64,000 bases of DNA from Mytilus californianus (Eukaryota). Position numbers and translations under genes: made by a program. Position 1 is the first letter of the stretch, and each line of letters begins with the position of its first letter. Of this stretch, positions 3,601 through 58,070 are shown one piece after another. A model generated the notes under the pieces. It saw only the letters and a list, made by a program, of their open reading frames with translations, ran no database searches and was not told the origin of the DNA. The stretch is taken from NCBI RefSeq assembly GCF_021869535.1, contig NW_026262734.1, positions 65,782,001-65,846,000 on the forward strand, given 5' to 3'.

Positions 3601-4599
3601 CTAATGCAACTTTATAGAAAACATCAGTGATCTATCACAAGTAGTTCCTATCAAACTATCTTAAGCAGAAAACAACATTGAAAATTGCTTATTAATTGAA
3701 AAGTCACAGGACCTTGAACTACATGTGTAGGTGATAGGGCCTTGAAGTAGCCATCAAACTGATATGTACGTCATGTACTGATAGTAATATAATGCAACCT
3801 TATCAGCCAAGGGTATCACTTAAATAAGTTATTCAGAGAAAATAACATCCATGTGCATGATGTGTTATTACAGATGCTTTCATGAGTTGTCTACTGTGTA
3901 TTCATAAAATGTTCTTAATCTATAGTAACATATGTTTGCAATTGTTATCTGTTAAAACAAATCTTAAATATTTGACTTTTTATTGGGAACTTGGGAATTC
4001 TTGAAACTTTGCGCAGAAACTTAATACATAGACTCATGAGACTGGATAACTCATTTTCCAATTAAATTAAATCATATTTGATCAACCGTGGTAAATCAAT
4101 GAGACAAGGCTTTTAATTGATAAACTTAGCTGTATTAATTAAAAAGCTTAGTTTTTACAGGCAAATAATTCAGAATGGGACACTTGTGAATTACTTGGAA
4201 GCTTGCACATTACATGCATGTACCTCATTTTATGCTCTGATTATTATTTATTCCAATAAATTAAAATACATTGTGATTAAGCATGATAGATGTCTGAGCA
4301 AAGGCTTTGAGGTGATATAGAGTAGCTGTAATAACACCCTTTAGTTAAACAGGTATATTTTTTTCTGTAATAACACAGATGTTATATGTATGATTGGCAA
4401 ACTATATTAGTGTTCATATAGACAATAATAATATCAATAGAACTTGTATACATTTTAATAAAACAAAGGATGCATGCTGCCATTTTGAAACATGTAACAT
4501 ACATATGTTATCCCAGTTTTGGGATTTTTTTAGTCAACAATAACAAATGTATGTTATTTTTCTCTAATAACTTATTTAAGTTATACCCTTGACTGTTTA
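620..4599 (+). repeat. Diverged direct duplication (620-1375 and 3826-4599)
   Basis: Colinear blocks, e.g. ttattacagata/gc..atgagttgtctact, gaaactttgc..agaaact, gcatgat..tgtctgagcaaa and ccttgactgttta. Confidence 0.8.
1519..1688. mobile_element. MITE with CAG..CTG termini and 5-bp TSD GTGTT
   Basis: Imperfect TIR cagaggaggatttag / ctagatctgccactg. GTGTT occurs at 1514-1518 and 1689-1693. Confidence 0.65.
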
Positions 4600-4647: not shown

Positions 4648-5040
4648 GTATGTACTTAGGTGAGGTTTAGGAATTTTTGTCAGATGTTCAGACTCCTTGG
4701 TTTTTTTCCTACGATACAGGGTAAAATATTTTGCCCCATAACACCCAGTTTTCTTTTTATATAAGATTTCAATAGCTCATAAAAGGTCATTTACCAAAAT
4801 TTAAGCAGATTCTAGATTTCTTTTCTTTCGATTTGAGACCCAAATTACACCAATGCAAATATAAGGTAAAAGTCCGAGTCAGCCTTTTCCTGCCATTTTA
4901 AAAAAATCAAATATCTCGAAAAGGAGCTCCATAACCTATCAATATTTTTAGCTTATTTTGTTCCTTAACTAATGTTCTTCTGACTTATAGTATCAACTCT
5001 AAATTCAATTTTTTTTTAATTTCACCTAGTCAGTACATAC
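4648..5040. mobile_element. MITE inserted into a duplicated segment
   Basis: TIR gtatgtact(t)aggtga / tcacctagtcagtacatac. A paralogous empty site is at about 3640-3672 (caaactatcttaagcagaaaac). The TSD is not clean. Confidence 0.55.
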
Positions 5041-5943
5041 ATCTTTAAGTAGAAAACTTAACAATTGTTGATGCATCCTCCTCTGCCATTGCCAGTCAAG
5101 CACTTGTAACAGTAACCTATGTAATTACATGTCACTACATAATACCTTCAGCAATGAGCATAACACCCATATCATATAGTAAGATAATATGAGGTAGGTT
5201 TGACCTCATGATCTCCTGAACATGCTGAATGTTATTGTTATTGTTTTAATTTAACAGCTTAATTAAATCAGGCCACTGGTTTTCTCTTTGAATTCTTACA
5301 CATTTAGTATAAAAAAAATTCCTGCAGAATGGAAAAATTGTAAAAAATGTGTCTTGCATTTGGTCAGGTAAATGGCAACAAGGCAATACTTGTCTGAAGA
5401 ACCAAATTTGTCCGACATGTCAGGCATATAAATTTGGGACCTCTAGTTACAAATGTAACATATCGGTTAAGTGTAAGACAATAATGAATATTCAAGAAAA
5501 ACTGACCGAAAGTAAACATCAGTATGTTGATTTTTTTTCTTGGGTACAAGTCAAATTGGCACCTATAGGAAAAGTCAAATCAGTACCGGGTCAATAATAT
5601 TTTTCATTTTTTTCTGCTTTATAATTATTTAAACAAAAATTGGGGGTTGGATCTTACTTGGTTCAGTTCATGTTAAAACTCTTCACATGTTATGAAGCGA
5701 TTTGAATACATAAGTTAACTGTTTGAAGTTGTTAATTTAATCACTCTATAGAACAATGTAGAAGGATAATCACTCTATACAGGTATTATCACCATATAGG
5801 GTGTTTGTTCCCAATCTGTTCTGAGTGTTCAACATATAATTCACATGGGTGCAGAAATAACTACATCGGGTGCCGATTTAACCAGGTGCCGAAGTAACTA
5901 GAAATTAGTAGAATTCTTTTTCTTTAACCTAACAAGAAATAGA

Positions 5944-7079: not shown

Positions 7080-7230
7080 ATTGTAGTCGTTTGCTATCGC
7101 ACCAGTTTAAGTTTGGGATTTGGTTGCATCGTTTTTAGTTTCAATGCGAAACAATCTGGTTATATCTAACAATATTTGTAAATGGAAGAGACAAGTCGGA
7201 TAATATTTGATTCCGGTCGTACATGCAATC

Positions 7231-8214
7231 ATGACTTCCACATGGAACGAAATTACAGTTGCTATCAAAGAAAATAGACATGAACTGAAATTGCAAGGGC
7301 CTACCATATCAAGTTATCTTGAGGCAAATGGTGTAGACTCTAGGCTGTACCAATTAACAAACCTAAACTACCTTGATTTTTCAAATACACGCCTAACTGA
7401 ACTCTCTGATGACATAGGATCCCTTGTCAATTTGACCAATTTAGTTTTAGACCACAACAAGCTAACTAGACTTCCTGAAACCATTTCAAAATTGAAGAAA
7501 TTGAAATGTTTCGATGTTTCAAATAACCAGTTGGAATCAATTCCGGAGAGTATCTCTGGGTTAACTGAGCTTCATACCTTGAATTGCAGCTTGAATAGAA
7601 TTGGCACATTTCCATCGATTGAAAAGATGACATCGGTCCATGTGCTTATCATTTCAAACAATAATTTAACATCACTACCTGAGGGAATATATAGTGAAGA
7701 GTTGTCTCATCTTAGTCAAATACAGGCCAGCGACAACCAGATTGAAGAAATTCAGTCCGAAATTTCAGACTTGCCTCACCTGAACTTGTTGGACTTGTCT
7801 AACAATAAGCTATCCACCGTACCTGCTGAACTAAGTGCCTGTCCAAAGTTGAAAGAATTGAATTTGAAAGGAAATAAATTTAAAGATAGGCGATTTGGCA
7901 AATTGGTTGAACAGTGTCCGACAAAATCTGTTTTAGATTATCTAGCAAATGTTTTGAAGAAAGAGCAGGAAGCATCTGGCAAAAAAGATAAAAAACAAAA
8001 AGACAAAAAGAAGAGAGGGAAGAAAGCTAATAAAGATGTAGAAGAGGTTGTTAAAGATATGATAAATATCTTGCATTTCCAAGAAGATGAAGGTTACACT
8101 GTACAAGTGACGCCAGCAGTCCTGTCAGTCCGTCAATATGTATTATGTTGTATAGTAAGGCAGCTGTACCTCAAGAAGTCTAATATGATCTACAAACATT
8201 TCATAACACTTCAG
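7231..8214 (+). CDS. LRRC47: LRRC47 exon 1 (328 codons: all leucine-rich repeats, Lys-rich linker, start of B3/B4-like domain)
   Basis: The ORF track 7207..8235 shows repeated LxxLxLxxNxL motifs. The first ATG is at 7231 (MTSTWNEI..RHELKLQGP, resembling the LRRC47 N-terminus). The donor CAG|GTATAT is at 8214/8215, phase 0. Confidence 0.92.
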
Positions 8215-9082
8215 GTATATTTATTGCCTCAATAAGGAAAAGAACTAGAAAATATTAGTTTGTTAAAAAAGACTTAAATATTCAATTATCTCTGTTTTGG
8301 GTTTAAAAAAAGACTTAGCAACGTATATTTTAATAACATAACTTGTATATATATATTAACATGTATGTGTATAAAAAATTTAAAGAAAAGATACATATTT
8401 AGAAAACACAACATCTAGTGTCTAGTATGATAAACATGCCTGACAGTCAAATGTAATTTTTAATCATTTATATACATACACTGTAAAGGTAATTCTATAC
8501 ATGCTATAAGAAAATATAAGTATTACTCACAATTTTTGTTTTTAAATTACAATAGATTTGTTTGTTTCCATTGATTGTCTACCTTCTAGACTTCTACATG
8601 TTCAAAATTTTGAAGGAACATTACTTGCATCATTTAAATTTAACATACAAAACTGTTGAAAATAAACATGATAAGGTTAAGTTTTATATTTAACATTTTT
8701 ACAAAATCTGAAATTAAATCTGATTAGCTGGGAACATGGGGAAAGAGTGGACTTTCCACATTGGACAGGAAGAAATTACAAAATTTATGTGAAGTGTAGT
8801 GACCATACAAACTCCAAGTACCATACTCTCAAGGTGACTCAGTTTAAAATCACTCTTTCACTGAGACTGAATGCTGGTGATTTTGATCCGGAGGGCTAAT
8901 TCTGAAATATCTCTTTCTATCATGTCTTTATCATGTTTATTCTACACATATATCATGTATATAACAGGGTCCTAATTCAAGGTGGTTTTGACCTCCAATG
9001 ATATGTTATCATCCTGTTTCAAAGTGAACTACTCAATAAGAGTGATTTTTCGATGAATCACCTTAGATGAACTGCATACAGC

Positions 9083-10373: not shown

Positions 10374-10435
10374 GTAAGGGCTTGTCAGGCATACATAAGT
10401 AAGGGCTTGTCAGGCATACATAAGTAAGGGCTTGT
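10358..10435 (+). repeat. 25-bp tandem triplication spanning the LRRC47 exon 3 donor
   Basis: tgtcaggcatacataagtaagggct begins at 10358, 10383 and 10408. Confidence 0.97.
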
Positions 10436-10469
10436 TCATAGTTTTGAAAGATCATTTAAATTATAACCA

Positions 10470-10860
10470 TTAAAATTGAGAATGGAAATGGGGAATATGT
10501 CAAAGAGACAACAACCCGACCAAAGAGCAGACAACAGCCGAAGGCCACCAATGGGTCTTCAATGCAGCGAGAAAATCCCGCACCCGGAGGTGGTCCTCAG
10601 CTGGCCCCTAAATAAAATTGTGTGCTAGTTCAGTGAAAATGGACGTCACACTAAACTCCAAAACATATAAATGAACTAAAATTAAAAAACATACTAGACT
10701 AACAAAGGCCAGAGGCTCCTGACTTGGGACAGGCGCAAAAATGCAGCGGGGTTAAACATGTTTTGAGAGATCTCAACCCTCCCCCTATACCTCTAGCCAA
10801 TGTATAATTAAGAAACACATAGCAATACACACAGTAAAACTCAGTTTAAAAGAAGTCAGA
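10470..10860 (-). repeat. Interspersed repeat family B (in LRRC47 intron 3)
   Basis: Near-identical reverse complement of 28670-29066. A further fragment is at 14870-14935. Confidence 0.9.
10708..10797 (-). ncRNA. Candidate twister ribozyme, P5-open permutation, intact core (repeat family B)
   Basis: Minus strand: GCTAGAGGT(P5) ATA GGGG(P2') GAGGG [TTGAGATCTCTCAAAACATGTT] T^AA CCCC(P2) GCT GCATTTTTGC(P3) G CCTG(P4) T CCC AAG T CAGG(P4') A GCCTCTGGC(P5'). All conserved twister core elements map in order. Canonical P1 is absent. Confidence 0.7.
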
Positions 10861-13671: not shown

Positions 13672-15078
13672 CTAAAAAGAATGGTGATTTTTTTTATCAT
13701 GTTTATTATGAGTATATATTTAGTACAAATTGATTTTTTTCAATAACATAAAATTAGAAATTTCAGATAAAAAGATCTTTAGCTCATGATTATTAAAATA
13801 TCTTATAAATGGAGTGAAAACAATGTAAATTCTGTATGATGAAGTAAGGACAAAAAGGCTCAAATTAAGTTCAAAATTTAATGAAACCATACATGATCTT
13901 TAATTTTCCCTAACATGACTTAGGAAATAGGTGTTCATGAATTTAAAATAAAATTTCCCATTCGTTCAGTTTCCATAGCAACAAAACATGATGACATTAG
14001 TATTTTTGTAAAATGTCTTTATTTTCCTTATTTTGTATCAAACTTTTGAGTTTATTTTGGATTGAAAAATAATGAGCGCATCAAAATTATATTTGGTGGA
14101 ATGATGCACGGTAAATAGCTATAATAAGAAAGCTCTTACAAATAAAAAAAATCTTATTATAAGATGCAGCCAATGTTTCCACCACAGAAATTTGGATAGT
14201 AAACTGTATAAAATTGACACTTTCTTCATTTTTGTGAAATATGTGTATATAACAGTATAATGAGATAATTATGGCATCAAACTTAGTATAAAATCTTTTC
14301 TGATTTATTTAAATTGAAGATTTTATCGTTTCCCTATATTATGAGCAAATTTGAAGTAATTTTCAAAAATCATTTTCAAATATGGGCCTACATTCCCTTT
14401 CTTCTACAGAAGTTTTGAAATGTGTTTATTATTGTAAAAAAATTGACAGCATTAGTATTGCATTAAACAGAATTTCTATATTAAATTTGTTCCCAGTCTT
14501 TATATGCAACATTTCCTTAAATTGTGTTAATTAATTTTCTTTTTGTTATTCCATCACAGTAATAAATGTGCACAGTAATTTTGGAAGTTAAAGTAATTAC
14601 AAGATAAAAATAAACTGTTCTATATATCTTTGTTTTGGATTCTTTAGCTTTAGGTATTTTTCTTACTATGCATTATAGCTTGTAACATGAATTTATATCA
14701 TATTAGTCTCAGATACAACAATATCGGTAGAAGGGGGAGGCATTTTTCTTACCATTATAGCTTAAAACATTAATTTAAATCATTTTTATCTCAGATACAA
14801 GATATTTAATTATTTGGTATACTGTTTTACAGAACATCTATATGTTTAAGTTTCAAACAGAATTTGGGATAAAATTGAGAATGGAAATGGGGAATGTGTC
14901 AAAGAGACAACAACCCGACCAAACAGCAGAAAACAGCCATTCCATCCTCCTCCCCCAATCATCCTTAAAACACATTCAGTTTTACATGAAGAAGTAATTC
15001 TGATAGAGCATGGATATTTTTCATGCTGTTGCATTTCTTTCAATGCATTCAATTAGCCAGCCTCCATGCTTTAATATA

Positions 15079-19660: not shown

Positions 19661-20088
19661 TTAAGCCTTTTTCAAGCCTTTTCAACTGATTTTTATAGTT
19701 TGTTCTAATGTTGTACTGTTACACCATTGTCCCAGGTTAGGGGAGGGTTGGGCGCCCGCTAACATGTTTAACACCGCCACATTCTGTATGTATGTGCCTG
19801 TCCCAAGTCAGGAGCCTGTAATTCAGTGGTTGTCTTTTGTTTCTGTGTATCATATTTGTTTTTCGTTCATTATTTTGTTCATAAATTAGGCGGCCGTTAA
19901 TTTTCTCGTTTGAATTGTATTACATTTGTCATTTCGGGGCCTATTGTAGCTGACTATTCGGTATGGGTTTTGCTCATTGTTGAAGGCCGTACGGTGACCT
20001 ATAGTTGTTAATTTCTGTGTCATTTGGTCTTTTGTGGAGAATTGTCTCGTTGGCAATTATACCACATCTTGTTATTTTTGTATATATG
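19661..20088 (+). repeat. Interspersed repeat family A, inserted in a HINE-like element
   Basis: Diagnostic ttgaaggccgtacggtgacctatagttg..ggagagttgtctcattggcaatcataccacatc block. Other copies or tails lie at about 3331-3462, 34455-34620(-), 36480-37100, 45700-46226, 57500-57655, 60108-60160(-) and 63340-63595. Confidence 0.85.
19733..19818 (+). ncRNA. Degenerate twister-like core (family A)
   Basis: CAGGT..GAGGG..T^AA CACC GCC ACAT..ATGT GCCTGT CCC AAG TCAGG A GCCTG. P2 is damaged (CACC against AGGG). Confidence 0.5.
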
Positions 20089-23912: not shown

Positions 23913-26900
23913 CATAATAATATAATAATAATAATAATAATAATAAATTCTTTATTTAAAGAGGGTAACTCAATTAGAAGTAGTCTAATTTTCATTGAGG
24001 CCCTCAAACAAAATACATGTATACATTTAACATTCATACATTCGATTCATACATTAAAATACAATATATATTACTAGTATATACACAATTCAATCATTCA
24101 AACATACAAATGGCAATAAATGGCAATAATTGGTAAAGTTTTTATTAAATTTTCTTATACTTACAATAAAAGAAAGAAAACAAATTAATCTACTTGCATA
24201 GAATTTTCAAGAAAATGATTATAACAATGTTTCTTAAATAATTCCACATTTCGACAATTTTTTATTTTGAGTGGTAAATTATTCCATACCTTTGTTGCAG
24301 AATAATGAAAAGATTTTTTATAAAAATTTGTATTTGGTCTTGGAACAAATAGATCATTATTAGAGACAGATCGTAAGTTGTGGTGTTGCACATCATTAAT
24401 ATTTAGCATTGTTAAGTAATCAGGTGTTAGTCCATTTACAATTTTATACATTAGAATTGATTGTTGGTATTTTATTCTTTTTGTAAAAGATAGCCATTTT
24501 AAAGACGAAAACATAAAATTAGATGGAACAGAAATATCGCATTCAAGTATAATTCTTGCTACTCTTTTTTGAAGTTTTATGATTCTATCTGAATCTTTTT
24601 GTAATAAATTTCCTCAAACTGAACTACAATAGTCTATATATGGTAGAATATATGCATTATAAAATAGTTGTCTTGTGTGTATAGGCAAATATACTTTGAT
24701 TTTAAACAAAAGTGATATTTTAGATGAGATAGTCTTGCATATACGATCAACATGATCCTCCCAGATTAAATTTTCATCAATGTCAATTCCAAGTAATTTG
24801 AAAGAATGGACATTTTCAATACATGTTTCATTGACGGTAATACATAATTCTGATAGTTGTGTAAGTTTTTGTTTTGTTTTCATACACTTTGTTTTTTGTG
24901 CATTAATTTTCATACTGTTATTGTTACACCAAGATTGTATAGCATTTAAATCATTTTGCAATATGCTGTTTATTTTTTCAATGTTTTTATTATGAAAATG
25001 CAATGTTGAATCATCAGCATATAAATCCATGTCGGATTGTTTAACATGAAGTGGTAAATCATTTATATAAATTAAAAATAACAGAGGATCTAAAATAGAA
25101 CCTTGCGGCACTCCATATTTTACAAACGATTTATCAGATTTAATGTTAGCGTATTGAACTTCTTGTTGTCTCTCAGACAAATATGATTTTATCCAATCTA
25201 TCGAATGTTCTCCGATATGATAAAATTTTAACTTTTCTAAAAGTATGGCATGGTTAATAAGGTCAAAAGCCTTACTGAAATCTAAAAACACAGTACCAAC
25301 TATTTCTCCATTGTCTAAATATTTTAACCATTCATCGATTAGTTTAGTCAGCGCTGTTTGGCATGAATGACCTTGCCTGAAACCTGACTGAGCGATATGT
25401 AACAATTTTTTATTATTTAAGAATGCATATATATATAACTGTGTACATACATGTCTCTCAAAAACTTTAGATATGGTATTTCAAATAGAAATTGGACGAT
25501 AATTGGAGGGAATATCTGTTGGTCCTCCTTTATGTATAGCAGTTACTCTTGCAATTTTTAATTTTTGCGGAAAACGATTCGACGTTATACTTTTGTTTAT
25601 TAGAAAAGTTAGTGATGGCGATATTATCTCTGCACTTAGCTTTAAAAGTTTTGGACCAATTCCATCTAAACCTGCGGATTTATTAATATTAAGGTGTTTT
25701 AGTTGTGAACACACCTCTCCAACAGAAATGAGTTTTAATTTAAAAATTTCAGTTTCCTTTAATTTTGTACTAGTAAAAGTTTGTAGCTTAGAAAAATCCA
25801 TATCTGAAGTATTATTTCCAATAAGTTTTTCAGCTACGGAAGAAAAATGAACATTTAGTGTATTAACAATATCTTTGGGGTTATAAACAGTTTGATTTTC
25901 ATACTGCATTTTAGGTGGAAAAATATTATCCATTTTTGGATTTAACTCTTTAATGTGATTCCAAAGTTCTTTACTATTCTTGGAACTAGATATAGCGTTT
26001 TGATAATATTCCTTTTTTGCATTAAATATTAACGACGTTGTTTTATTACGCCACTTTTTAAAGTTTACCCAATCTTTTTTTGAATGATACATATTTCTGT
26101 ATTGAATGGAATTTTTAATTTCTTCATTGAACCATTCGGCTTGTTTAAATGGTTTTACTCTTTTAGTTTTCATTGGTGCGTGCTTGTTGATAACTTGATT
26201 AAAAAGTTCATACCATTTGTCGACAGAAATATCAATATCTTCTTCCATTTCAACAATATGAAAAGGGGTTTGATGTAAGTCTGCACAAAAGGCATCCTCA
26301 TTAAAGTTTTTGAAACACCTATACTTTATTTCGATATGATTTTCTTTCTTTACCTTTATATTGATTTTTCTATTTAAGCATACAGGGTAGTGGTCACTTA
26401 AAGCATATGAAGGAACATGACAATGAGCAATATTTTCAGGATTAGTAGTGTAAATATGATCAATAAGAGTTTCTGATTTGTCACAAATACGTGTTGCAGT
26501 GCAAATTTGTTGTTGAAGATTAAAATGGTTTATGAAATTCATCCATTTTCTATTTTCAATTTTTATCAAGTCAATATTAAAGTCCCTCATTAAAATGATC
26601 TCTTTGTTTTCTGAAAGAGCTGCGTTAAATTCATTTTCCTCCTCAAAAAGATCTATCCAGGACTTAAGGGAATTTGGTGGTCTATAAACAGTACAAATGA
26701 AGAAAGGTTTAGATTTTGGAAATTCTACCTCTAACCATAAAGTTTCTAATGTGTTTATTGATAAATCAGATCTATTTTTAACTGCAATAGAATCTTTGAC
26801 ATAAACCAATAGACCACCACCATCCTTACTCTGGCGATCTTTTCTGAAAATTTAGTATCCTGGCACTTTACGTACATTGTTCATTGTTGATATCAGGTTT

Positions 26901-27578
26901 TAAGAATGTTTCAACTAATCCAAATAAATCTAAATATTTGTTGTTTATAGTAATTATATTCTTTAACTCGTCAAATTTAGATAAAATATGTCTAACATTA
27001 AGGCATACAGCATTGAAACCTTTACATTTTAGATTAAGACAGGCTTTTTTTATAATAAAATTGAGAATGGACCTATAATGTTTGTTTCTATCACTTTTAG
27101 GTTTTGAGCTAAAGCTATTAGTGCACATACCGTTTTCTGATGTATGACAATTTTCCCTTGATTTTTTGTTTTTAAAAATCTCAGCTTCAGACATAGAGTT
27201 TTGAGTACATATACATTTTGATGTATTGCAATTTGGACATAAATAGAGAAGTATATCAAAATTGTTATGAAGAAGTAATGATTTACTATGATTTGAGAAT
27301 TTGTCTACAAATTGAAATACATCAGTTTTATCCTAAAATGTGTGACAGTCTTTATAATGATGACCATAAAAGACACAATTAAAGCAGATACCATTGAATG
27401 TATTTACAATGCTTTGTCTTTTACCATGCTGTTCATTATTTTCATTATTGGACTGAGAACTATTTGTGCGGATGAAGATGTTTACAACCCTGTTAATGTG
27501 TCTAAGTAGCTGAATTGTACCCTGATTAGTAAGGTGTATGCCATCATGGTGATAGTAAGTAGACACAAGATCGCCGCC
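23913..27578 (-). mobile_element. CR1/L2-type non-LTR retrotransposon, 5'-truncated and degenerate
   Basis: APE motifs (LNVRHI, LVETFL, VYRPPN, DFNIDL, IDHIY, SDHYPV) and RT motifs (QSGFRQGHS, LDFSKAFD, GVPQGSIL, YADD) are spread over ORFs 26868..27194, 25481..26809, 24614..25405 and 24185..24514, with frameshifts and stops. On the minus strand AATAAA is followed by a (TTA)n tail at 23913-23955. Confidence 0.93.
27333..27578 (-). pseudogene. LINE ORF1 C-terminal remnant (SGNH-esterase-like DGIH motif plus CCHC knuckle)
   Basis: The peptide ..YHHDGIHLTNQG..CFNCVFYGHHYKDC contains C-x2-C-x4-H-x4-C and lies directly upstream of ORF2. Confidence 0.7.
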
Positions 27579-28080: not shown

Positions 28081-28389
28081 CATATTTACATGTACCTGAC
28101 CTGCTATGCTTGAAATATTTTTAACTGGACCAATCCATCCATGAAACCGTTACGTACACTGTTGTGGGCAGTGATTTACAGATTTCCTCTTGTGATTAAA
28201 ACAAAACCTGGTCAGCTGAACATTGTTTAATTATACATCATATTATTTTCTTGTTTAAATATACCATTAATACAAAAATGTCAGTATTCACCTCAAAAGC
28301 TAACAAAACCTTTAAACAGACTTATTAAGAAGGGATATTGTTACGATACTGTTGTCAGGTCATTAAAGATTGCATATTTTGGCTTTGAT

Positions 28390-29066
28390 ATTGATTCAAT
28401 TATAGGGTCTTTGCATCGGAATTAAACATATTTATTCTAAAACCAGTTGTTGGCATGACACGGGTTATGTTCTTCACATATATTTTATGATGGTATAATA
28501 CTAAACCCCTAACAGGAGGGATTGTGCCTGATATTCATATGATGAAGACATAATCTTTCAATCAGTTTAATTGAGGTCTGGAGCTGGCATGTCAGTAACT
28601 GCTAGTAGTCTGTTGTTATTTATATATTATTGTCATTTTGTTTATTTTCTTTTGTTTCCTATTCTGACATCGGACTCGGACTTCTCTTAAACTGAGTTTT
28701 ACTGTGCGTACTGTTGTACGTTTGTTTTTTCTACATTGGCTAGAGGTATAGGGGGAGGATTGAGGTCTCAAAAAACATGTTTAACCCCGCCGCATTTTTG
28801 CGCCTGTCCCAAGTCAGGAGCCTCTGGCCTTTGTTAGTCTTGTATCATTTTTAATTTTAGTTTCTTGTGTATAATTTGGAGTTTAGTATGACGTCCATTA
28901 TCACTGAACTAGTATTCATATTTGTTTAGGGGCCAGCTGAAGGACGCCTCCGGGTGCGAGAGTTTCTCGCTGCATTGAAGACCCATTGGTGGCCTTCGGC
29001 TGTTGTCTGCTCTATGGTCGGGTTGTTGTCTCTTTGACACATTCCCCATTTCCATTCTCAATTTTA
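28390..29066 (+). repeat. Interspersed repeat family B, longer copy
   Basis: Ends ..ggttgttgtctctttgacacattccccatttccattctcaatttt and matches 10470-10860. Confidence 0.85.
28739..28828 (+). ncRNA. Candidate twister ribozyme (family B), one T2 mismatch
   Basis: Same layout as 10708-10797, with a 9-bp P5. GAGGG reads GAGGA at 28755-28759. Predicted scissile bond 28782/28783. Confidence 0.6.
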
Positions 29067-29899
29067 TCATTAATACAAAGCCGTTAAAAAAACCTGTCAG
29101 TTGAAATTTAATGAAACAAAATTATATGTAGTGGCATCGTACCCATTTTCTATTATTTTCTACTTAGATCAGGATTTTGTATGACGTTTAATATTTGTAA
29201 TTTGTTTTAGTAAGATTTTATTTACAGATAGATTTTTGGTATTCGTTATAATCTGGCGGCTGCTTACAGAATGTCTAGTACGTACAATACTTATCATATT
29301 ATCTAATAATAACATTAACGACATCAATTTTATTGTCCCAGAGAAGCATTTAAAAAATTTGAAAGTCCAAAACCTAATACAAACGTGAAAGAGCTCATAT
29401 AAAACTACAAAGTAAAGCCAAACACTTACACGGAACCAGTATATATAACAACTCTTATTATATGATTTGATTTTTTTATTAAGGTCAAATAAAGTAAATT
29501 TAAAATGCTACGTTATTTTTCACGACATTTGAAACAGTATTGTTCAAGTAAAATGATATAGCAAAACGTAAACTATGAAAAAAATATTTAGAGGTTGATA
29601 GAGTACTTTTGTGATTGTTGATCAATTTAGTACAAATATTTACATAAGAGAAGAATAATGAATTAAATAAGATAATAATGTATTTTAAATGAACCACTTG
29701 ATATTTCTACACAAATATATAATAATGTAATGTTGTGTACAAGTAGTAATTCAGTACCAATTATACAAATTTCGTTCAGACATTTGGCGCCATCTATCAT
29801 TATTTCGAAACTATATACTGTTCTTCTAAGTAATAGAAGGTTATCTTGAATAATTAACCAGCTTGATGTTTAAACCGTAAATGTATGTGTTTTATAACT

Positions 29900-33435: not shown

Positions 33436-34380
33436 ATGGATACCAAAATGCGTCGCATGTCTCCACTGGAAGACGAAACCGGATTGGTTGACATGGATGA
33501 GGGTGACGCTAAAGGAAGAAAGAGAAAATTGCAAATGAACTTCGGGGCTCTATGTGTCATCTGGTTATTCACATTTACAGCATATTCTGGTTTACAAAAT
33601 CTAGAAACCGCGCTGTATCAGGATGTAGGGTTGTATACCTTAGCTGCGTTGACAGGTGGCGGTGTCATCGCATGTCTTTTAGCACCGACAGCTATCAGTT
33701 ACATCGGATCCAAAGGAGCACTTATTGTATCTTGGATATGTCTTTCATTCTTTGTAGCCGCTAATTTCTTTGGTTTTATAGGAAGTGGCTTTAAATATTT
33801 GCTTGTGGTTGCTGGCGGAGTTGAAGGTCTATCTACTGGATTAATGTGGACCGCACAAGGATCTATAACTACGACAATAGCCATGGAGTATCATGAAATA
33901 ATAGGGGAACCCATGGAGAAGACCCTAAGTACACTTTTTGGAATATTTTGTATGTTCTTTCAAAGTACTCAAGTGTGGGGTAATTTAATATCTTCTCTTG
34001 TTTTGCAACAAACCTCCCAAATTACAAAACACGAATCCAATTTCACATTCTGTGGAGCAGATTTCTGTCCATCAGATGTTCTGGCGTTGCGAGGAGGCAA
34101 GCACGGGAATGGCACTGGCGGGCCGTCAAGTTTGCCAGAACCTCGACTCATAAACATACTGACTGGGATATACTTAGGTTCTACGGCTGTCGGACTGTTG
34201 ATAACTATAGCCTTTCTAAAACCAGTGAAATCGTCAATGAGCGACAGTGGAGTGACACTTAAGGTCCGTCTCCTTTCCACTGTCCGTTTACTGTTTACCA
34301 ATCTGAACATGTTTATGCTGGTACCCTTCAGTTTGTATACTGGCATGGAACAAGTTGTGATGTATGCAGAATTTACAAAT
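33436..34380 (+). CDS. UNC93A: UNC93A-like MFS membrane protein, copy 1, exon 1 (315 codons)
   Basis: Contains the motifs FTAYSGLQNLE, GLMWTAQG, FGIF..FQSTQVWGNLISS and FCGADFCP, typical of the UNC-93 family. The donor AAT|gttagt is at 34380/34381. Confidence 0.88.
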
Positions 34381-35214
34381 GTTAGTAAAGTTTTTTTTAG
34401 GGGTTCGGTAGATTGGTGTCATTTAACTAAAAAAAACAAATTAAATATCAAAATAAGAACATGTGATATAATTGCACATGAGACAACTCTCCACCAGAGA
34501 CCAAATGACATAGAAGTTAACAGCTATAGGTCACCATACGGCCTTCAACAACGAGCAAAAACCCATACCGCATAGTAAGTTGTAAATGGCCCCGAAATGA
34601 CAAATGTAAAACAATTCAAACGATGATAACGGCAGTTTGCGAACCAAATACAAAAATCAATGTTCTCAGTGGGCTTGATGATTACCAGTAGTTGTTGGTT
34701 AGTCTGTAGTTGCTGTACATTAAGTAATGAATAACAGTATATATGTTAAATTTCTTTGCCTGTAACAGTCTGTTATTTATTGAAATTAAAGGGTCTGAAT
34801 GTTGTTTAATGAATATATTGATTGATTAATTGATTGATTGTTGGTTGCTTAACGTCCAGTGGCAAAATAATAGAGAATAATGGGCTAAAAAATTAAAGGA
34901 CAAAGACAAATGGGCCAAAAAATATTAATAGCGACAATTTGCCATAACAACTAAAGAATACAAAAATGAAGGACCTCCCCGATCTAAGCCCCCGTATTAC
35001 CTCACACCTGTGATCACGAATGCACATAGGAGGCATTGCTGACATTATACAAGTAATTCAACTTATACCGTTCATATGGGTCGTTTTGAACTTGTAGCAT
35101 GATTTGAGCTTTTGCTTGGTGTTAAAGTCCTCACTGTGACTTTAAGATGACGAACAGTCATAAGGGCGCTGTTTAAGTACGTGCCTAGATTTTTGCCATG
35201 CATTATTACACTAA

Positions 35215-36110
35215 AACTCTTTTTCTTAGCAAAATTATACCAACTTCACCTGCACATGGGATATACACTTCCCAACCCGTTCGGTATTCAAGAGGTTTCA
35301 GCTGCTACTCAGACTTTATAAAACGTCACCAGTGTCTGAGCAGAGAGTTGGTGAGCCAAGGTTATGCCAAAGAACGTCTCGTCCTTTTTCTAAAAAAGTT
35401 CATTGGAAGATACCAAGACCTTGTTGATAAATATTCCGTATCAACTTCATAAATAATACATGATGGTCTTGAAGTATAGATTCTAGGTACTGACGTTGTT
35501 TATCATCTTGATTATGTGTTATAGCGGTCTTTTTATTTGTCCTTGTATATTTTTAATCTTTACTGTTTAGTCCATTTTTGGTAATATATTTTGGCGTGGT
35601 TCGGTGCATCCCGCTATTGTGTTATTGTGCTATTGTCAATTTTGTATTCTTGTCTTTCATGTTTGCTTATGTACTTTGTCTATCGTGTGTCTTTATGCCA
35701 ATATGTTTTTCTAGTGATTAAGATTATATTACAATGTTGACTGCTGTACCCCAATTTTTGACATATACCTATTATGTCTGTTTGTTTTGCTCGCACATTG
35801 TTGTCAATATAATGGAATTCTATGCGACTGTCATACAAGTGAGAGGTTTAGCTAGCCATAAAACCAGGTTTAATCCACCATCTGTCAGCTGCCCTGGACT
35901 GCTTAGGGTTTATGTATTCCAGGTGATTTAAAATAAAAGATATTACTCACAAAAAAAAATCAACCATTTTCTATATAAGGAAATGCCTGTACCAAGTGAG
36001 GAATATGACAGTTGTTTTCCATTCGTTTGATGTATTTGAACTTTTGATTTTGCCATTTGATAAGGGACTTTCCGTTTTGAATTTTCCTTGGAGTTCGGTA
36101 TTTATTTTAT
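35215..36110 (+). mobile_element. Penelope-like RT C-terminus and 3' region (repeat family C) with a twister-like core
   Basis: The ORF 35198..35452 peptide (PAHGIYTSQPVRYSRG...KKFIGRYQDLVDKY) is homologous to the thumb region of the 40.1-40.7 kb RT. The frame closes about 35480. That the tail belongs to the same element is inferred from contiguity. Confidence 0.7.
35828..36011 (+). ncRNA. Twister-like core (family C), interrupted by an insertion of about 86 bp at P3
   Basis: P5 CTGTCATA(35828-35835)/TATGACAG(36004-36011), GAGGT 35843-35847, T^AA 35871-35873, ACC 35877-35879, GCCTGT ACC AAG T 35985-35997. Confidence 0.55.
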
Positions 36111-36738
36111 TTCACTATACTCTTAATTACAAAATGTCTTATCAGGTAGCGAATTATAACGAATCTAAATTTTACCGGGTTTATAACAGATTGTTTAAGC
36201 TAGAAACCATACTAATCTAAAATAGTACATGAATATATGTCGTAGTGCAGCGAGAAAATAGACAAGAAAATCATTTTCCTAAAATAAAATGCCATTACGT
36301 TACAGTATAGAGAAAATGTTTTTGTCTTCCAAATTTTTTATCCCAGAATATCTAGGACCCATGTTCCATCGTTCTGCATTGATCATACATAAAATGTAAT
36401 TGTTTATTTATTTACATGGTGTAATTTATTTTTCTGTTGAATTTTACACAATGATAGTTTTTTTTTTTTAATTTTCGGAACATAAATGTGGTTATTGTCT
36501 TAGATGCATATTTTTTTTTTTAGTTGTTATTGGCTTTGGACTAGCTGTCAGTAACTGCGAGTACTCTCAGATCTGTAAATAGTGTATTTTTTAGTGTGGG
36601 GATGTATTAATACCCTGCCATGTCCGGTTTGTGTTTTTGTTGGATGATTTTTTCTGCTTTGTATCGATCTGATGAGTTAAGCCCTTTTCAACTGATTTTT
36701 ATGGTTTGTTCTTATGTTGTTTTGTTACACCACTGCCC

Positions 36739-36821
36739 CAGGTTAGGGGGAGGGTTTGGTGCAAGCAAACTAGTTTAACCCTGCCACATTCTCTATGTGC
36801 CAATCTCAAGTCAGGACCCTG
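36739..36821 (+). ncRNA. Degenerate twister-like core (family A) in UNC93A-like copy 1 intron 1
   Basis: GGGG GAGGG .. AACTAGTT T^AA CCCT GCC .. GCCAAT CTC AAG TCAGG. P4 is damaged. Confidence 0.45.
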
Positions 36822-37722
36822 TAATTCAGTGGTTGTCGTTTGTTGCTGTATATCATATTTGTTTTTCGTTCATTGTTCTGTACATAAATCAGGCTGTTAG
36901 TTTTCTCGTTTGAATTGTTTGATATTTGTCATTTTGGGGCCTTTTATAGCTGACTATGCGGTATGGGTTTTGCTCCTTGTTGAAGGCCGTACGGTGACTT
37001 ATAGTTGTTTACGGTGACTCATAGTTGTTAACTTCTATGTCATTTGGTCCCTGGTGGAGAGTTGTCTCATTGGCAATCATACCACATCTTCTTATTCTTA
37101 TATGGTGGAGGTTTATGATTATGTATGCCTAAAAACGTAAAAATTAATTAATTACTTAATATAGACAATTTCATTGAAAAAGTACGAGATTAAATATTGG
37201 TATAAAACTCTTATACAAGATTAAATACCAGATGTTTAATTGTGATTTTCCCTTTTTGCTTATTGAATACATTGAAAGGAACTTACCAGATATAATAGTT
37301 ACGCTTTTCGCCCAATGTTTTTTATGAACTACTTAAAAAAGTTGTAAATAAACACATCTTTTGTTTGGTTTCAATAGCAAAAACCGGCTTGTTCTTTTGT
37401 TGTTGATTTTTGTGATAGATTAGCGGTAAGATATATAAGTTAAATATCCAATACATTGCCAATTTATTTTAGGAACTTTTTCATGTTGGGGTGTACCTGA
37501 GAAGGAGGGAAACACTGTTGAACGTATATTTATATATTTATATATGTGTGTAGTTCATGATGTTCAAACTGCCTTTTCTTTTCTTTGTATGTATACTAGA
37601 CTATTGTTTCATTTTGTTATTGTCTTATTAATGTCTTATATTGTACTATGCTCCTTGTGAGCCCATTTGATGGAAATAAAACATCTTCTTCTTCTTATAT
37701 GTTTTGTACGTCATTTTTTCAG

Positions 37723-37993
37723 TCATTCGTTGCCTGTAAGCTCGGTATAGAATGGATTGGTTATACCATGATCTGCTTCGGGGTCTGTGATACGGTTGGC
37801 TCATTATTGGTAGGATTCATCGGGAAATTTACTGGACGGCCGCCATTATTCATCATTGCTACTATTTTGAACCTTGGAGTTCTTGGTATTATGAGATTTT
37901 GGTCCTTCAAAGAAGAAGTACCTTTTTATCTATTCTTTGTTATACCAGGTGTATGGGGATTAGCAGATGGAATCTGGCAAACGCAAAGTGGAG
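37723..37993 (+). CDS. UNC93A: UNC93A-like copy 1, exon 2 (SFVACKLGIEWIGY...WQTQSG)
   Basis: Acceptor ttttttcag|TCA, 271 nt, donor GGAG|gtatgt (phase 1), open frame. Confidence 0.88.
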
Positions 37994-38020
37994 GTATGTT
38001 AAAAGTAATTTCATGTACAT

Positions 38021-38235
38021 GAGGGTCTGGATTGGGTTTACAGAATAGAGAATAATGGGCAAAAAAATGCATAAAAAATAAAGAATAGGGAAAAATAGGC
38101 AAAACAAATAAAGAATAAAGAATAATTGGGTACTAAATTATAAAGAATAGAGAATAATGGACAAAATAACCAAAGAGACAAATGGATTAAAAAATTAAAG
38201 AATACATAAATGAAGGATCCCCCATCCAGACCCAT
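38021..38235. mobile_element. MITE just downstream of UNC93A-like copy 1 exon 2
   Basis: Imperfect TIR gagggtctggattggg / cccatccagaccc. Related pieces lie at 34865-35000 and 63820-63955. Confidence 0.5.
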
Positions 38236-40117: not shown

Positions 40118-40860
40118 TCTATTGATTGACAACATATTTGTTACGTTTGGAGGACGTGTTTTTCAACAAACAATCGGCATTCCCATGGGAACCAACTGTG
40201 CTCCTCTTCTTACCGACTTGTTCCTTTATTTATATGATGCTGACTTCATACAGGAACTTCTTAGGAAGAACGAAATGAAGTTAGCAGTATCCTTTAACTT
40301 CCATTTCCGCTATATAGATGATGTTCTCTCACTAAATGATTCAATATTTGGTAACTATGTTGGACGCATCTATCCCATCGAATATAAGATAAAGGCTACA
40401 ACAGATACAGTCAAGTCTGTCTCATATCTTGACTTACATCTAGAAATTGACAATGAGGGTCAGTTGAAAACAAAACTTTACGACAAAAGAGATAATTCCA
40501 TCTTCCCAATTGTGAACTTTCTATTTCTATGTAGCAACATTCAAGCAGCGCCTGCATGCGGAGTATATTTCTCCCAAGTTGATACGATATTCCAGGGCTT
40601 GTATTTCCTATCAAGACTTCCTTGATAGAGGATTGCTGCTCACAAGGAAGCTATTAAACCAAGAGTTCCAAGTGGTGAAGTTGAAATCCCAGTTTTTGTG
40701 GGGTACGTTCGTGTTGCTCAGTCTCTAGTTTTCTATGTTGCGTTTTGTGAACTGTTGTTTGTCTGATTGTCTGTTTCTTTTAAAGCCATGGCTTTGTCAG
40801 TTTATTTTCGACTTATGAGTTTGAATGTTCCTTTGGTATCATTCGGCTGTTTTTTTCAAA
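40118..40860 (+). mobile_element. Penelope-like element RT fragment plus 3' tail
   Basis: Motifs GIPMGTNCAPLL, FRYIDDV and KLYDKR. After a frameshift near 40578 it reads LIRYSRACISYQDFLDRGLLLTRKLLNQ, then joins a 3' tail also seen at about 55720, 58400 and 58950. Confidence 0.85.
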
Positions 40861-43476: not shown

Positions 43477-44361
43477 ATGGATGTTATCATCGAAAAACAA
43501 AATTTAAACAAAGAAAACTTACGGAAGGAAAAAAGGAAGCTCTTATTCAATTTTGTGACAATATGCTTTATATGGCTGTTTGTTTTTACCGCATATTCAG
43601 GACTGCAAAACTTAGAGGCGGCAGTAAATGCTGAGACTGGGCTTTATTCGTTGGCGGCAGTGACTTCCGGTGGAGTCATTTCCTGTCTAGTAGCTCCGAC
43701 AGTCATAAGTTATATTGGATCTAAAGGAGCGCTTATTGTTGCATGTATTTGTCAGTGTATTTTCGTAGCAGCAAACTACTATCCAAAACCGTATATTTTG
43801 ATAACAGGTGGCGCCATTGTTGGTTTATCTTCAGGACTATTATGGACGGCGCAATCATGCTATGTGACGATGATCGCATTAGACTATCACAAAATAACTG
43901 GAGAATCGTTAGAAGCTATACTTAGTCGATTGTTTGGAATATTTTTCATGGCTTTTCAAAGCACACAAGTTTGGGGCAATCTAATATCGTCAGCAGTGTT
44001 CCAGCTAGGCGGCGCATCGACGGAACAGGCTAACAACACTTTTTGTGGTGCTCAATATTGCCCCTCAGATCAGACGATCAGTAACGGAAATGAGACTTCA
44101 GAAGCAGCCATTAGACCGGATCGCCATTTAGAAATTACTCTAATTAGCATATATTTAGGGATTACATTTATTGGTTTACTTCTGACAGTTTTTGTTCTTA
44201 AACCAATCAAATCTTCCATGAGTGACAAATATTTTACTTTAAAGGAACGATTAGCTGCTAATTTGAAATTACTTTTTACCGATCTAAATATGGCCATGAT
44301 AATTCCGTTCGCACTTTATACCGGCATGGAGCAGGTTATGATGTTTGCTCAGTTTACAACA
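43477..44361 (+). CDS. UNC93A: UNC93A-like copy 2, exon 1 (295 codons)
   Basis: Paralogous to 33436-34380 (FTAYSGLQNLE, FQSTQVWGNLISS, FCGAQYCP). The donor ACA|gtaagt is at the same codon position as in copy 1. Confidence 0.88.
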
Positions 44362-44501
44362 GTAAGTATATACTGAAGAAAAAAGTAGCGGAAATAAATT
44401 TTCACATATTTATTTGACGAGTGAAATTTGAATTTTATGGCTTATTTTCTTTGTTACCATGATTCATTTATCGTTATGTTTAGAAGTATTATGGTTTATT
44501 T

Positions 44502-47978: not shown

Positions 47979-48806
47979 GTATGTTTACGAAAAAATAGTT
48001 ATTTATGTTGTTTACTTGAATGTTTTGATTGTCCGGATAATGTCCATTGTCCGTCAACAATTGATAGTTTACTGCAAGATGACAAATTGCATTACATTAA
48101 TTTATTGCTGAAACATACAAAAAAGTTAAAATATAGTGGTAGACATTGTAGCTATTAACATGCAGTACTAGTACAATCGCATGTTATACAGTATGAAGTG
48201 TTAGAATGGTCGTGGTAGGCAAAATCTGACATTAAAAAAATATTGTCCCTCTAATATAATGCATCCTAAGTTTTAATTATCGTAAAAAATGAAAGGCTTT
48301 TGCAAAAAAAAACCTTTAGAGTTTCTTAAAAAAAGGTTTTAAAGGATTGCACTGTATATGACGTTGTTGTACACTCACAAGTAATCCGCCGATATTAGAT
48401 TAAAAACACTTTTTCAATGTCAGCGGACTAATTTATTTGGGCCTCGTTTTCAGTAACTGCGGGAAGTTTTTGATATCACGTGTGCATGTATTTTTTTTAC
48501 CGGTATTACAAGGTGGCGTGCTTTTATGACCTTATGACCTTATTTGAAGTGTACTTTCTTCTATGTATCCTTTTATTTCATTGATGGAGATTAAAAATCT
48601 CAAAAATTAGTTTACCTCGCCACATAGTCACGTTCCTGTTCGAAGTCATGGAATTTGTCAGTGATTATTCATATCTTAGCGTCTTTTGTCTTTTAAGGAA
48701 TTCAGAAATGATGGCAGATCTTTAGTAGCTACTCTTGAATTTATTCACAAATTTCTAGACGCGACGTAGAATAAATCATCAAAGATATCAGGTTTTTGTT
48801 TTTTTT

Positions 48807-48850
48807 ACGCCAGATGCGTGTTTCGTCTACATACCACTCATCAGTGACGC
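48807..48850 (-). ncRNA. Minimal type I hammerhead ribozyme, degenerate
   Basis: Minus strand: GCGTCA(stem I) CTGATGA GTGGTATGTAGAC(stem II) GAAA C-ACGC-ATC TGGCGT(stem I'). The core boxes are intact; stems II and III each carry a mismatch. Confidence 0.7.
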
Positions 48851-49034
48851 TCGAACAAAAAAAATTAAAACATACGACTCATCAGTGACGCTCGTACCAA
48901 CAAAATTAAAACATACGACTCATCAGTGACGCTCGAACCAAATAAATTCAAACATACGACTCATCAGTGACGCTCGAACCAACAAATTTAAAACATACGA
49001 CTCATCAGTAACGCTCGAACCAATAAAATTAAAA
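48838..49034 (-). repeat. 41-bp tandem array containing the hammerhead CTGATGA box
   Basis: tcatcag occurs at 48838, 48879, 48920, 48961 and 49002. Confidence 0.93.
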
Positions 49035-56606: not shown

Positions 56607-58070
56607 TACGGAAGCGTATTAGAGCTACACAACTTTTTTTTTAATATTTCTTCCTATGTTTGCGTTATAACGCAAACCTTTGCGTAATAACGCAAACCTT
56701 TGCGATATAACGCAAACCTTTGCGTTATAACGCAAACCTTTGCGAAATAACGCAAACCTTTTGCGTTATAACGCAAACCTTTGCGTTAAAACGCAAACAT
56801 CTTGATTTCAAGTATTCATTAAGTTTTGTATATATGTCCGTCTGTCATTAATTTCGGTTGTGATCGATTTACTAGTAGATAGGAAAAGAACCATAAATAC
56901 AAGGCCAACTCATTATAATAAATATGCATAGGAATAATGGAATACTTAAAGTGCAATTATACATAAATTAAGAATGATTTGTGCATCAGAAAAGTATATA
57001 ATTTAACAAGAACATAGATATTGTATAGGCATATTTTAATTGAAAGAGCAAAACTAATGTCATACATTTGTGAAACTTTCAAGTCAAATAGACAAAATGA
57101 TCTTTCTGCTTTAAAATGAATTATTAATGAAGAAACATTTGTTTTTTTTAAATTTTGATGCAAGATTTTTTTTAAATCTCAAAATATGATCAAGATTCTT
57201 TGATAGAAATTCATGGAATTTTTATTTCAATCTAGTGAAGTAACTTTAAGATACTTGGGTAACAATTTAAATGTAGAGAACATAATTTTAATAATAAAAC
57301 ATCTTCATTTTATTGCAAAAAGGTAGCTTGTTTGGATCTAACCAACCTTACACAATCCTCAAACGAGAGCTTACTTTGGAAGTATATTTATATTTGGCTA
57401 TAACTATATTAGCAGGGTTGATTTTTTATATTCTTCAATACAACTTCAATTTACTCAATTTTCTTTGTAATATATATAAATGTATTATCATGTATATAAT
57501 TTTTGGGGCCCTGTATAGCTTGCTGTTCGGTGTGAACCAAGGCTCCGTGTTGAAGACCGTACTTTGACCTATATCAAATGGTTTGATTTTAGAAAGTGTG
57601 ACTTGGATGGAGAGTTGTCTCATTGCCATTCATACCACATCTTCTTATATCTATTATCCTACTCATTATTAGTCAATGATATGTTCTAAATATTCAAGCA
57701 TTTTACTTTGTTATGAGTACAAAGGAGCTAGGATACATTTTAATGTATGCAGCCTCCTCCATTTATAACTGCTACTTCCTTTGAATCTTAAATAAGAAAT
57801 AAGATAAAAAAAAATGTTTGCGTTATTTTGCAAATGTTTGCGTTATAACGCAAAGGTTTGCGTTATTTCGCAAAGGTTTGCGTTATAGTTAACGCAAAGT
57901 TTTGCGTTATATCGCAAATGTTTGCGTTATGATGCAAAGGTTTGCGTTATAACGCAAAGGTTTGCGTTATTTCGCAAATGTTTGCGTTATTTCGCAAAAG
58001 TTTGCGTTATATCGCAAAGATAGGAAGAAAATTATAAAAAAAAATTGTGTGGCGCTAATACGCTTCCGTA
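56607..58070. mobile_element. Foldback-like non-autonomous element with TAC..GTA termini and 6-bp TSD (IS3EU-like)
   Basis: CACAAC|tacggaagcgtattag ... ctaatacgcttccgta|CACAAC. The TIRs continue into arrays of a 20-bp unit at 56659-56800 and 57817-58018, in inverted orientation. Confidence 0.8.

Follow-up and report, generated by a model that had tools for sequence, protein, structure and literature searches.

A candidate type-P5 twister ribozyme in the 3' tail of Naiad Penelope-like retroelements, with palindromes in place of P1

An interspersed repeat on the minus strand of a 64,000-nt window of Mytilus californianus DNA (the window being the whole stretch analysed) raises the question of whether a mobile element carries a self-cleaving RNA here and, if so, which element that is. 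A sequence-only reading had placed a permuted twister core in this repeat, which it called family B. We put the probability at about 70% that the motif is a type-P5 twister in the 3' tail of a selenocysteine-encoding Naiad element, with a cut that we infer at U^AA and with P1 supplied by palindromes between copies. The type-P5 permutation of the twister is itself already published (Roth et al. 2014, as reviewed in PMC5408937).

The motif on the minus strand

Read directly, the 92 bases from 10798 to 10707 on the minus strand contain all twister elements in type-P5 order, and this order is the one originally described (Table 1). The P5 stem had also been recognized, although at 10 bp it is one pair longer than claimed. 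A single U separates the GC after P2 from P3, and a single G separates P3 from P4. A review of twisters describes three Watson-Crick pairs in T1, conserved nucleotides in L1 and L4, and G45 and the cut-site A7 as the likely catalytic residues of the rice twister (PMC5408937). The conserved L1 and L4 nucleotides are present here (AA 10753-10752, GAGGG 10781-10777 and a CCCAAG-type loop at 10728-10723), as are the essential stems P2 and P4, each of 4 bp and Watson-Crick paired. The double pseudoknot is formed by T1 (GGG/CCC) and T2 (GC/GU), the latter with the G-U wobble that had been pointed out. The cut named earlier, 10754/10753, coincides with the N^AA position of the consensus and is the predicted site; an alternative cut after palindrome 1 was ruled out because P2 does not follow there. 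We take the first G of GAGGG to be the probable counterpart of rice G45, a mapping made through the rice sequence, with which the numbering fits.

Table 1. Coordinates of the candidate twister, its carrier repeats and its relatives (window positions unless given as distance past the stop codon)
Feature	Position	Strand	Remarks
Candidate twister ribozyme motif, type P5, from P5a to P5b	10707..10798	-	Twister-P5 23.2 bits; own model R1 116.4 bits; fold
P5 5' arm (P5a) GGCUAGAGGU	10789..10798	-	Partner 10707-10716; sequence; two-sided changes at 10/10 pairs across families
AUA	between P5a and P2'	-	Sequence
P2' GGGG	10782..10785	-	Partner P2 10748-10751
GAGGG	10777..10781	-	Putative general base: first G; T1 formed by GGG and CCC 10726-10728
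23-nt linker	between GAGGG and U^AA	-	Contains palindromes 1 and 2
Palindrome 1 GAGAUCUC	10767..10774	-	10-12 nt in sister copies
Palindrome 2 AAACAUGUUU	10754..10763	-	Last base is the scissile U; proposed in-trans P1 strand; variants palindromic
Predicted cleavage site U10754^A10753	10753..10754	-	N^AA position of twister consensus
P2 CCCC	10748-10751	-	4 bp Watson-Crick with P2'
GC after P2	10746-10747	-	Pseudoknot T2 with G10723 and U10722
Optional stem P3 (GCA, loop UUUU, UGC)	10735..10744; arms 10744-10742 / 10737-10735	-	Compensatory changes in 3/3 pairs
P4 CCUG / L4 UCCCAAGU / P4' CAGG	10733-10730 / 10729-10722 / 10721-10718	-	AAG invariant
P5 3' arm (P5b) GCCUCUGGCC	10707..10716	-	Sequence, fold, covariation; preceded by A
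"Family B", 3' tail of Naiad-type Penelope-like element, 390 bp, 5'-truncated	10471..10860	-	89% identical to 29066-28676
Longer 5'-truncated copy (800 bp), same element	28272..29068	+	91% to L002, L007, L011 over 800 bp
69-bp fragment, extreme 3' tail of same element	14870..14938	-	95.7% identical to 10471-10539
Twister-P5 of second repeat family	19722..19824	+	R1 78.5 bits; P2 weakened; palindrome 1 GGGCGCCC
Twister-P5 copy, partly decayed (P4 mismatches)	36728..36827	+	R1 52 bits
Twister-like core, ~100-nt P3 insert	35821-36013	+	R1 20.8 bits; GAGGU/ACC in T1 like L019; P2 looks damaged
Decayed twister-like copy	48568-48656	+	R1 15.7 bits
L013, R1 twister	380 nt past stop
L014, R1 twister	322 nt past stop
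L015, R1 twister	264 nt past stop
L016, R1 twister	263 nt past stop
L017, R1 twister	263 nt past stop
L018, R1 twister	211 nt past stop
L019, R1 twister	725 nt past stop
L020, R1 twister	283 nt past stop
L023, R1 twister	271 nt past stop
L024, R1 twister	269 nt past stop

A check against the Rfam twister models had been proposed, and it gave a divided result. Twister-P5 (RF02684) aligned end to end over the full model, positions 1-58, at 10785-10718(-) (E 0.0046 in a 201-nt search against 4227 Rfam families), but its score of 23.2 bits lies under the gathering score of 37.6 bits. The match was therefore absent when the whole window was scanned at the gathering threshold, a scan that listed no twister; a second scan of the whole window by E-value lost it at the filter stage, and the motif surfaced only in the 201-nt scan. 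A custom covariance model had likewise been suggested; our model, R1, was built from nine copies and scores the motif as given in Table 1. P5, P2, P3 and P4 all occur in the minimum-free-energy fold (z = -2.66), and the window has three occurrences of a 23-nt core where none is expected. The motif is like the type-P5 twister of RF02684 in its element order, its ending in P5, its L1 and L4 nucleotides, P2, P4 and the optional P3, both pseudoknots and the N^AA cut site. It is unlike that class in having two palindromes for P1, a G.U pair in T2, a sub-threshold score and an animal retroelement as host.

The carrier element and covariation among its families

A 21-nt core was scanned against public metagenome contigs and found at 12 loci, three of which (L002, L004 and L007) are ~3.6-kb elements arranged head to tail. 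The ORF of L007 (498-3506, 1002 codons) contains four in-frame stops, all TGA, and terminates with TAA. Its motifs are a GIY-YIG close to the N-terminus with YVG at residue 106, a CxC (CNC) at 385, DKA ('PADKAAN') at 512 and YLDD at 787. The diagnostics of Naiads are an N-terminal GIY-YIG, CxC and DKA and, in clams, UGA codons in the reading frame and a SECIS immediately past the stop (Craig et al. 2021, PMC8557442). L007 has the GIY-YIG N-terminal to the reverse transcriptase, the CxC link and DKA instead of DKG, and the selenoprotein features are found as well, namely in-frame UGA codons together with a SECIS at or just past the stop. Matches to SECIS_1 occupy this position in every locus and reach the Rfam gathering score of 35 in three (35.3-39 bits in L015-L017). 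Pfam left the protein unrecognised when searched with pieces of the ORF, so the Naiad assignment depends on comparing the motifs by eye with those of PMC8557442. The elements are like the published Naiads in GIY-YIG, CxC, DKA, UGA codons, a SECIS past the stop, partial tandem arrangement and abundance in bivalves.

Full-length elements have the order GIY-YIG, CxC, reverse transcriptase, stop, SECIS, twister and then a tail of ~300 nt, with the twister ~0.2-0.7 kb past the stop; elements and their tails are frequently head to tail. The copy at 10471-10860 matches full-length L002, L004, L007 and L011 at their 3' ends with 84-86% identity. The longer copy at 28272-29068(+) retains the C-terminus of the ORF, with a stop codon at 28424-28426, and its twister at 28732-28830(+) scores 117 bits with R1 and has GAGGA for GAGGG. 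By these alignments and the motifs of L007, the repeat called family B represents the 3' tail of a selenocysteine-encoding Naiad element, a remnant of 5' truncation.

A protein search with the C-terminal 435 residues of L007 returned 4376 relatives, from which 10 loci in at least 7 samples were taken for divergence (52-76% reverse transcriptase identity) and contig size, with the RNA ignored. R1 matched in 10/10 of these protein-chosen loci, on the coding strand and 211-725 nt past the stop (Table 1). Rfam Twister-P1 scored at most 20.8 bits in the relatives against the 67.2 required, Twister-P5 had no match in L020 or L018, and L020 had only a partial Twister-P1 match of 13.5 bits; diverged families thus escape the Rfam twister models. 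Since most copies are missed by Rfam, the number of unannotated ribozymes in these very abundant mollusc repeats may run into the tens of thousands, a part of them intragenic.

Pairing covariation had been expected of a genuine twister family, and it is strong in P2, P3, P4, P5, T1 and T2. Twenty-three copies, all first found by R1, were parsed into elements. The GA of GAGGG, the AA past the cut and the AAG in L4 occur in 23/23 parsed copies, these being letters that the parser demands. For P2, T1, T2 and P4, 92.7% of cells are paired, in a register that the parser picked partly by pairing, and two-sided changes occur in 8 of 13 pairs; that fraction was reached by 0/2000 shuffles, which ignore sequence relatedness. 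The nested helices were counted in an alignment (A5) that was fitted to the model, where 89.1% of cells are paired against 67.2% in shuffles and 22 of 25 pairs are compensatory, and sliding the partner columns by 1-3 as a control left at most 46.5% paired. T1 reads UGG/CCA in L014, AGG/CCU in L020, AGA/UCU in L018 and GGU/ACC in L019, and the first pair of T2 (T2.1), G.U here, is G-C, A-U or C-G elsewhere. P2'/P2, here GGGG/CCCC, is elsewhere UGGA/UCCA, GGGU/GCCC or GGGC/GCCC, and P4 is elsewhere AUCG/CGAU, ACUG/CAGU or ACCG/CGGU. Some copies have core defects (GAGGA at 28.8 kb, a T1 U.U in the L016 family and the weak P2 at 19.7 kb). An intact twister core is indeed carried by an interspersed repeat, as the sequence-only reading held, its helices and both pseudoknots covarying across families; substitutions between copies show that the predicted twister RNA fold is under selection.

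Palindromes in the linker, a proposed mechanism and its rivals

The absence of a canonical P1 stands as regards a single molecule, where no P1 hairpin links GAGGG with U^AA, and a hairpin from the linker ends was ruled out, these being non-complementary; the linker has two palindromes instead. Of 21 distinct linkers, each running from GAGGN to the cut, 17 contain two perfect Watson-Crick palindromes, which cover 14-22 of 20-24 nt (p from shuffles 0.026 or lower, in most cases 0.001 or lower). Variants of palindrome 1 are UGAGAUCUCA, UGGGAUCCCA, GGGCGCCC, UUGGCCAA, UGAGUACUCA, AUGGCCAU, AGGUACCU, AGGAUCCU, GGGGCCCC and UGGUACCA, and close relatives differ at this site (AUGGCCAU, AGGUACCU, AGGAUCCU) with palindromy kept. 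The last base of palindrome 2 always lies at -1 or -2 relative to the cut, and its variants (AAACAUGUUU, AAACCGGUUU, AAACUAGUUU, AAAUGCAUUU, AAGCCGGCUU and AACCGGUU) are all palindromic. The central dinucleotides are only AU, CG, GC and UA, with one U-G wobble as the exception. A hairpin leaves its two central bases unpaired, so their self-complementarity would be unconstrained, whereas a duplex between copies would constrain it; a protein-binding DNA site would hold the sequence constant and is a misfit for palindromes whose sequences vary. In cofolding, the dimer was better than two monomers by 8-16 kcal/mol. Nested pairing in a domain-swapped dimer takes in one palindrome only, and both would need a pseudoknotted or side-by-side geometry. 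With sequences that change between families and self-complementarity kept through the centre, the palindromes fit an RNA duplex between two copies.

We propose that read-through transcripts of tandem or nested elements would fold the twister and that two copies, whether tandem neighbours or separate transcripts, would pair, each palindrome with its counterpart. P1 would then consist of palindrome 2 with palindrome 1 beside it rather than a hairpin, and each twister would be cut at N^AA (10754^10753 here). Such a cut would leave a 2',3'-cyclic phosphate and a 5'-OH and would trim unit-length element RNA, a task that canonical Penelope hammerheads have been proposed to perform, and efficient cutting, or RNA pairing, would require two copies. 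The copy at 10471-10860 is solitary and promoter-less, so any activity hinges on outside transcription; with its intact core, it probably acts only if transcribed and partnered. A stronger form of the proposal is that Naiads, dominant in bivalve genomes, carry a "double twister", whose P1 would arise solely when two copies meet through their fast-evolving, self-specific palindromes, in convergence with the Penelope double hammerhead; this we hold tentatively, at slightly less than even odds.

Twister P1 is dispensable in vitro for near-wild-type cleavage (PMC5408937), and since a twister cuts well without P1, the palindromes may be unneeded for catalysis. This speaks for a monomeric "mini-twister" that cuts without P1, with the palindromes serving RNA dimer linkage or partner recognition in packaging or template switching, comparable to retroviral palindromic dimerisation loops. 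The core elements and pseudoknots can all form in one molecule, and the palindromes diverge fast among close relatives, like a self-recognition code. However, the end of palindrome 2 at -1/-2 of the cut is the exact place of a P1 strand, and canonical Penelope elements have the same palindromic solution at the helix beside the hammerhead cut (PMC4209133), so that we consider this explanation unlikely. A purely structural role in the 3' UTR, such as offering the reverse transcriptase a handle in target-primed reverse transcription, with cleavage lost or never present, is distinctly less probable again. The location would suit such a handle, since 3' UTRs are the part of the template that retroelement reverse transcriptases bind, as would the T1 mismatches in several families and the C at N-1 in L019, but the catalysis-linked G of GAGGG and A1 and also the L4 AAG are kept in all families, and the covariation of T1 and T2 is like that of active twisters, neither of which a pure protein handle would need. 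Least credible of all, and nearly negligible, is a functionless chance resemblance to a twister in a repeat. A Rfam score of 23 bits is under the threshold, and a single such match is insignificant at genome scale; against this, the motif was found at the same place in 10/10 Naiad loci chosen blind to the RNA, and compensatory changes occur in each helix and in the two pseudoknots, a covariation that already contradicts chance. The reading that we prefer remains a type-P5 twister whose P1 would come from palindromes between copies.

Two independent copies of different families, L003:702-810(-) and L005:1527-1607(+), have homology that starts exactly at palindrome 2 (AACAUGUUUAAC...). This edge lies ~9 nt upstream of the predicted cut; it may be due to chance, or it may mark a preferred 5' end or a site of template switching.

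Known systems and other repeats in the window

Canonical Penelope elements carry minimal type-I hammerheads with a short palindromic helix III, thought to be dimeric in tandem copies (Cervera and de la Pena 2014, PMC4209133). The Naiad motif is like these hammerheads in being a ribozyme of the terminal repeat region, with a palindromic helix adjacent to the cut and wide sequence variation accompanied by covariation, and unlike them in belonging to the twister class and the Naiad clade. Naiads are abundant in bivalves and in partial tandem arrangement; hammerheads alone were searched for in them and none was reported, and twisters are unmentioned (Craig et al. 2021, PMC8557442). In some genomes that hold both, Naiads far outnumber the Penelope families with hammerheads, and a ribozyme was therefore taken to be unneeded for spread (PMC8557442). 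Should Naiads have a twister in the corresponding position, this argument falls, and self-cleaving RNA would look like a constant part of Penelope-like elements, exchanged between folds; if the double twister holds, dimer-gated ribozyme cutting would be a general need of the Penelope life cycle served by two unrelated folds. Palindromes in place of P1 would make this the first natural twister built to work paired, and they offer a direct test of why Penelope-like elements favour dimer-dependent ribozymes.

Published twisters include some from eukaryotic repeats and some from the 5' ends of LINEs, among them the twister variants at the 5' end of the Schistosoma mansoni Perere-3 (RTE) LINEs (Liu et al. 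2021, PMC8501958). These are likewise embedded in a retrotransposon whose RNA they are thought to process, with a P1 that is weak or drawn from flanking sequence. They are unlike the Naiad motif in being of type P1 at a LINE 5' end with P1 partly from the target-site duplication, whereas the Naiad motif is of type P5, in the 3' UTR and with palindromes. A 2024 high-throughput twister survey includes predicted type-P1 candidates in bivalves. Searches of the accessible literature for Naiads with twisters, for bivalve or mollusc twisters and for palindromic dimer twisters found no paper that describes this motif, although overlap with the candidates of that survey is possible; a 2026 preprint that treats animal retrozymes together with Penelope elements does not describe it either. 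The sequence-only reading knew of no description of the motif in such repeats, and none of this architecture or of its Naiad host was found in the literature searched; type-P5 twisters, retroelement twisters and predicted bivalve type-P1 twisters had been published.

Retrozymes are non-autonomous, hammerhead-bearing elements that yield circular RNAs. The repeats studied here are like them in being short, ribozyme-bearing and derived from or mobilised by retroelements, with tandem tails in L015 and L017 that could release unit RNAs; they are unlike them in carrying a twister, and the window copies are plain 5'-truncated tails. Each of the tandem tails of L015 has a twister (205-308, 4432-4530, 4779-4882 and 5356-5445), as does each of those of L017 (4962-5065 and 5807-5910). 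Tandem twisters lie 350-850 nt apart in these loci, and cuts at both ends would free short retrozyme-like unit RNAs. An interpretation of the 390-bp repeat as a SINE-like or retrozyme-like unit was dropped, because its 800-bp and 3.6-kb relatives reveal a truncated element tail.

Several other features of the window were recorded. A SECIS-like element occurs at 28477-28541(+), 50 nt past the remnant stop of the longer copy (SECIS_1 29.8 bits, gathering 35); a truncated retroelement fragment can spread SECIS elements through host genes. A 25-nt unit, CCCTTACTTATGTATGCCTGACAAG, is repeated three times in tandem at 10385-10460(-), immediately 3' of the element end, and Naiads are reported to prefer simple repeats as insertion targets. 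An LRR-repeat ORF lies near the motif at 7207-8235(+) and has a molluscan nearest cluster; neither the LRRC47 identity claimed earlier for this gene nor the placement of the motif in its intron 3 was confirmed, and further recognisable exons were looked for and none was found beyond that ORF.

The twister-like core with the long P3 insert is preceded by a C-terminal remnant of a Penelope-type reverse transcriptase ORF (35198-36013(+) in all, stop near 35452). A weak type-I hammerhead match at 48807-48891(-) (Rfam 20.3 bits, gathering 34) lies 150 nt from the decayed twister-like copy, and the window may hold both ribozyme kinds of Penelope-like elements. Another Penelope-type reverse transcriptase fragment, with GIPMGTNCAPL and YIDD, occupies 40122-40860(+); its tail differs, and no twister was found in the tail of this different family at 40.6-40.9 kb. 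Kinship of the repeat with a non-LTR element at 24.6-27.2 kb(-) was dropped, the two being on opposite strands with no sequence in common; this retrotransposon (24614-27194(-)) has a 442-aa ORF followed by an RVT_1 ORF (E 2e-28). UNC-93-like ORFs at 33436-34575, 37648-38022 and 43477-44376(+) are apparently host exons with Penelope-type fragments in between. An array of short inverted and tandem units (UUGCGUUAUAACGCAAAGG-like) extends over 56640-58020 and gives several spurious matches to Rfam microRNA families.
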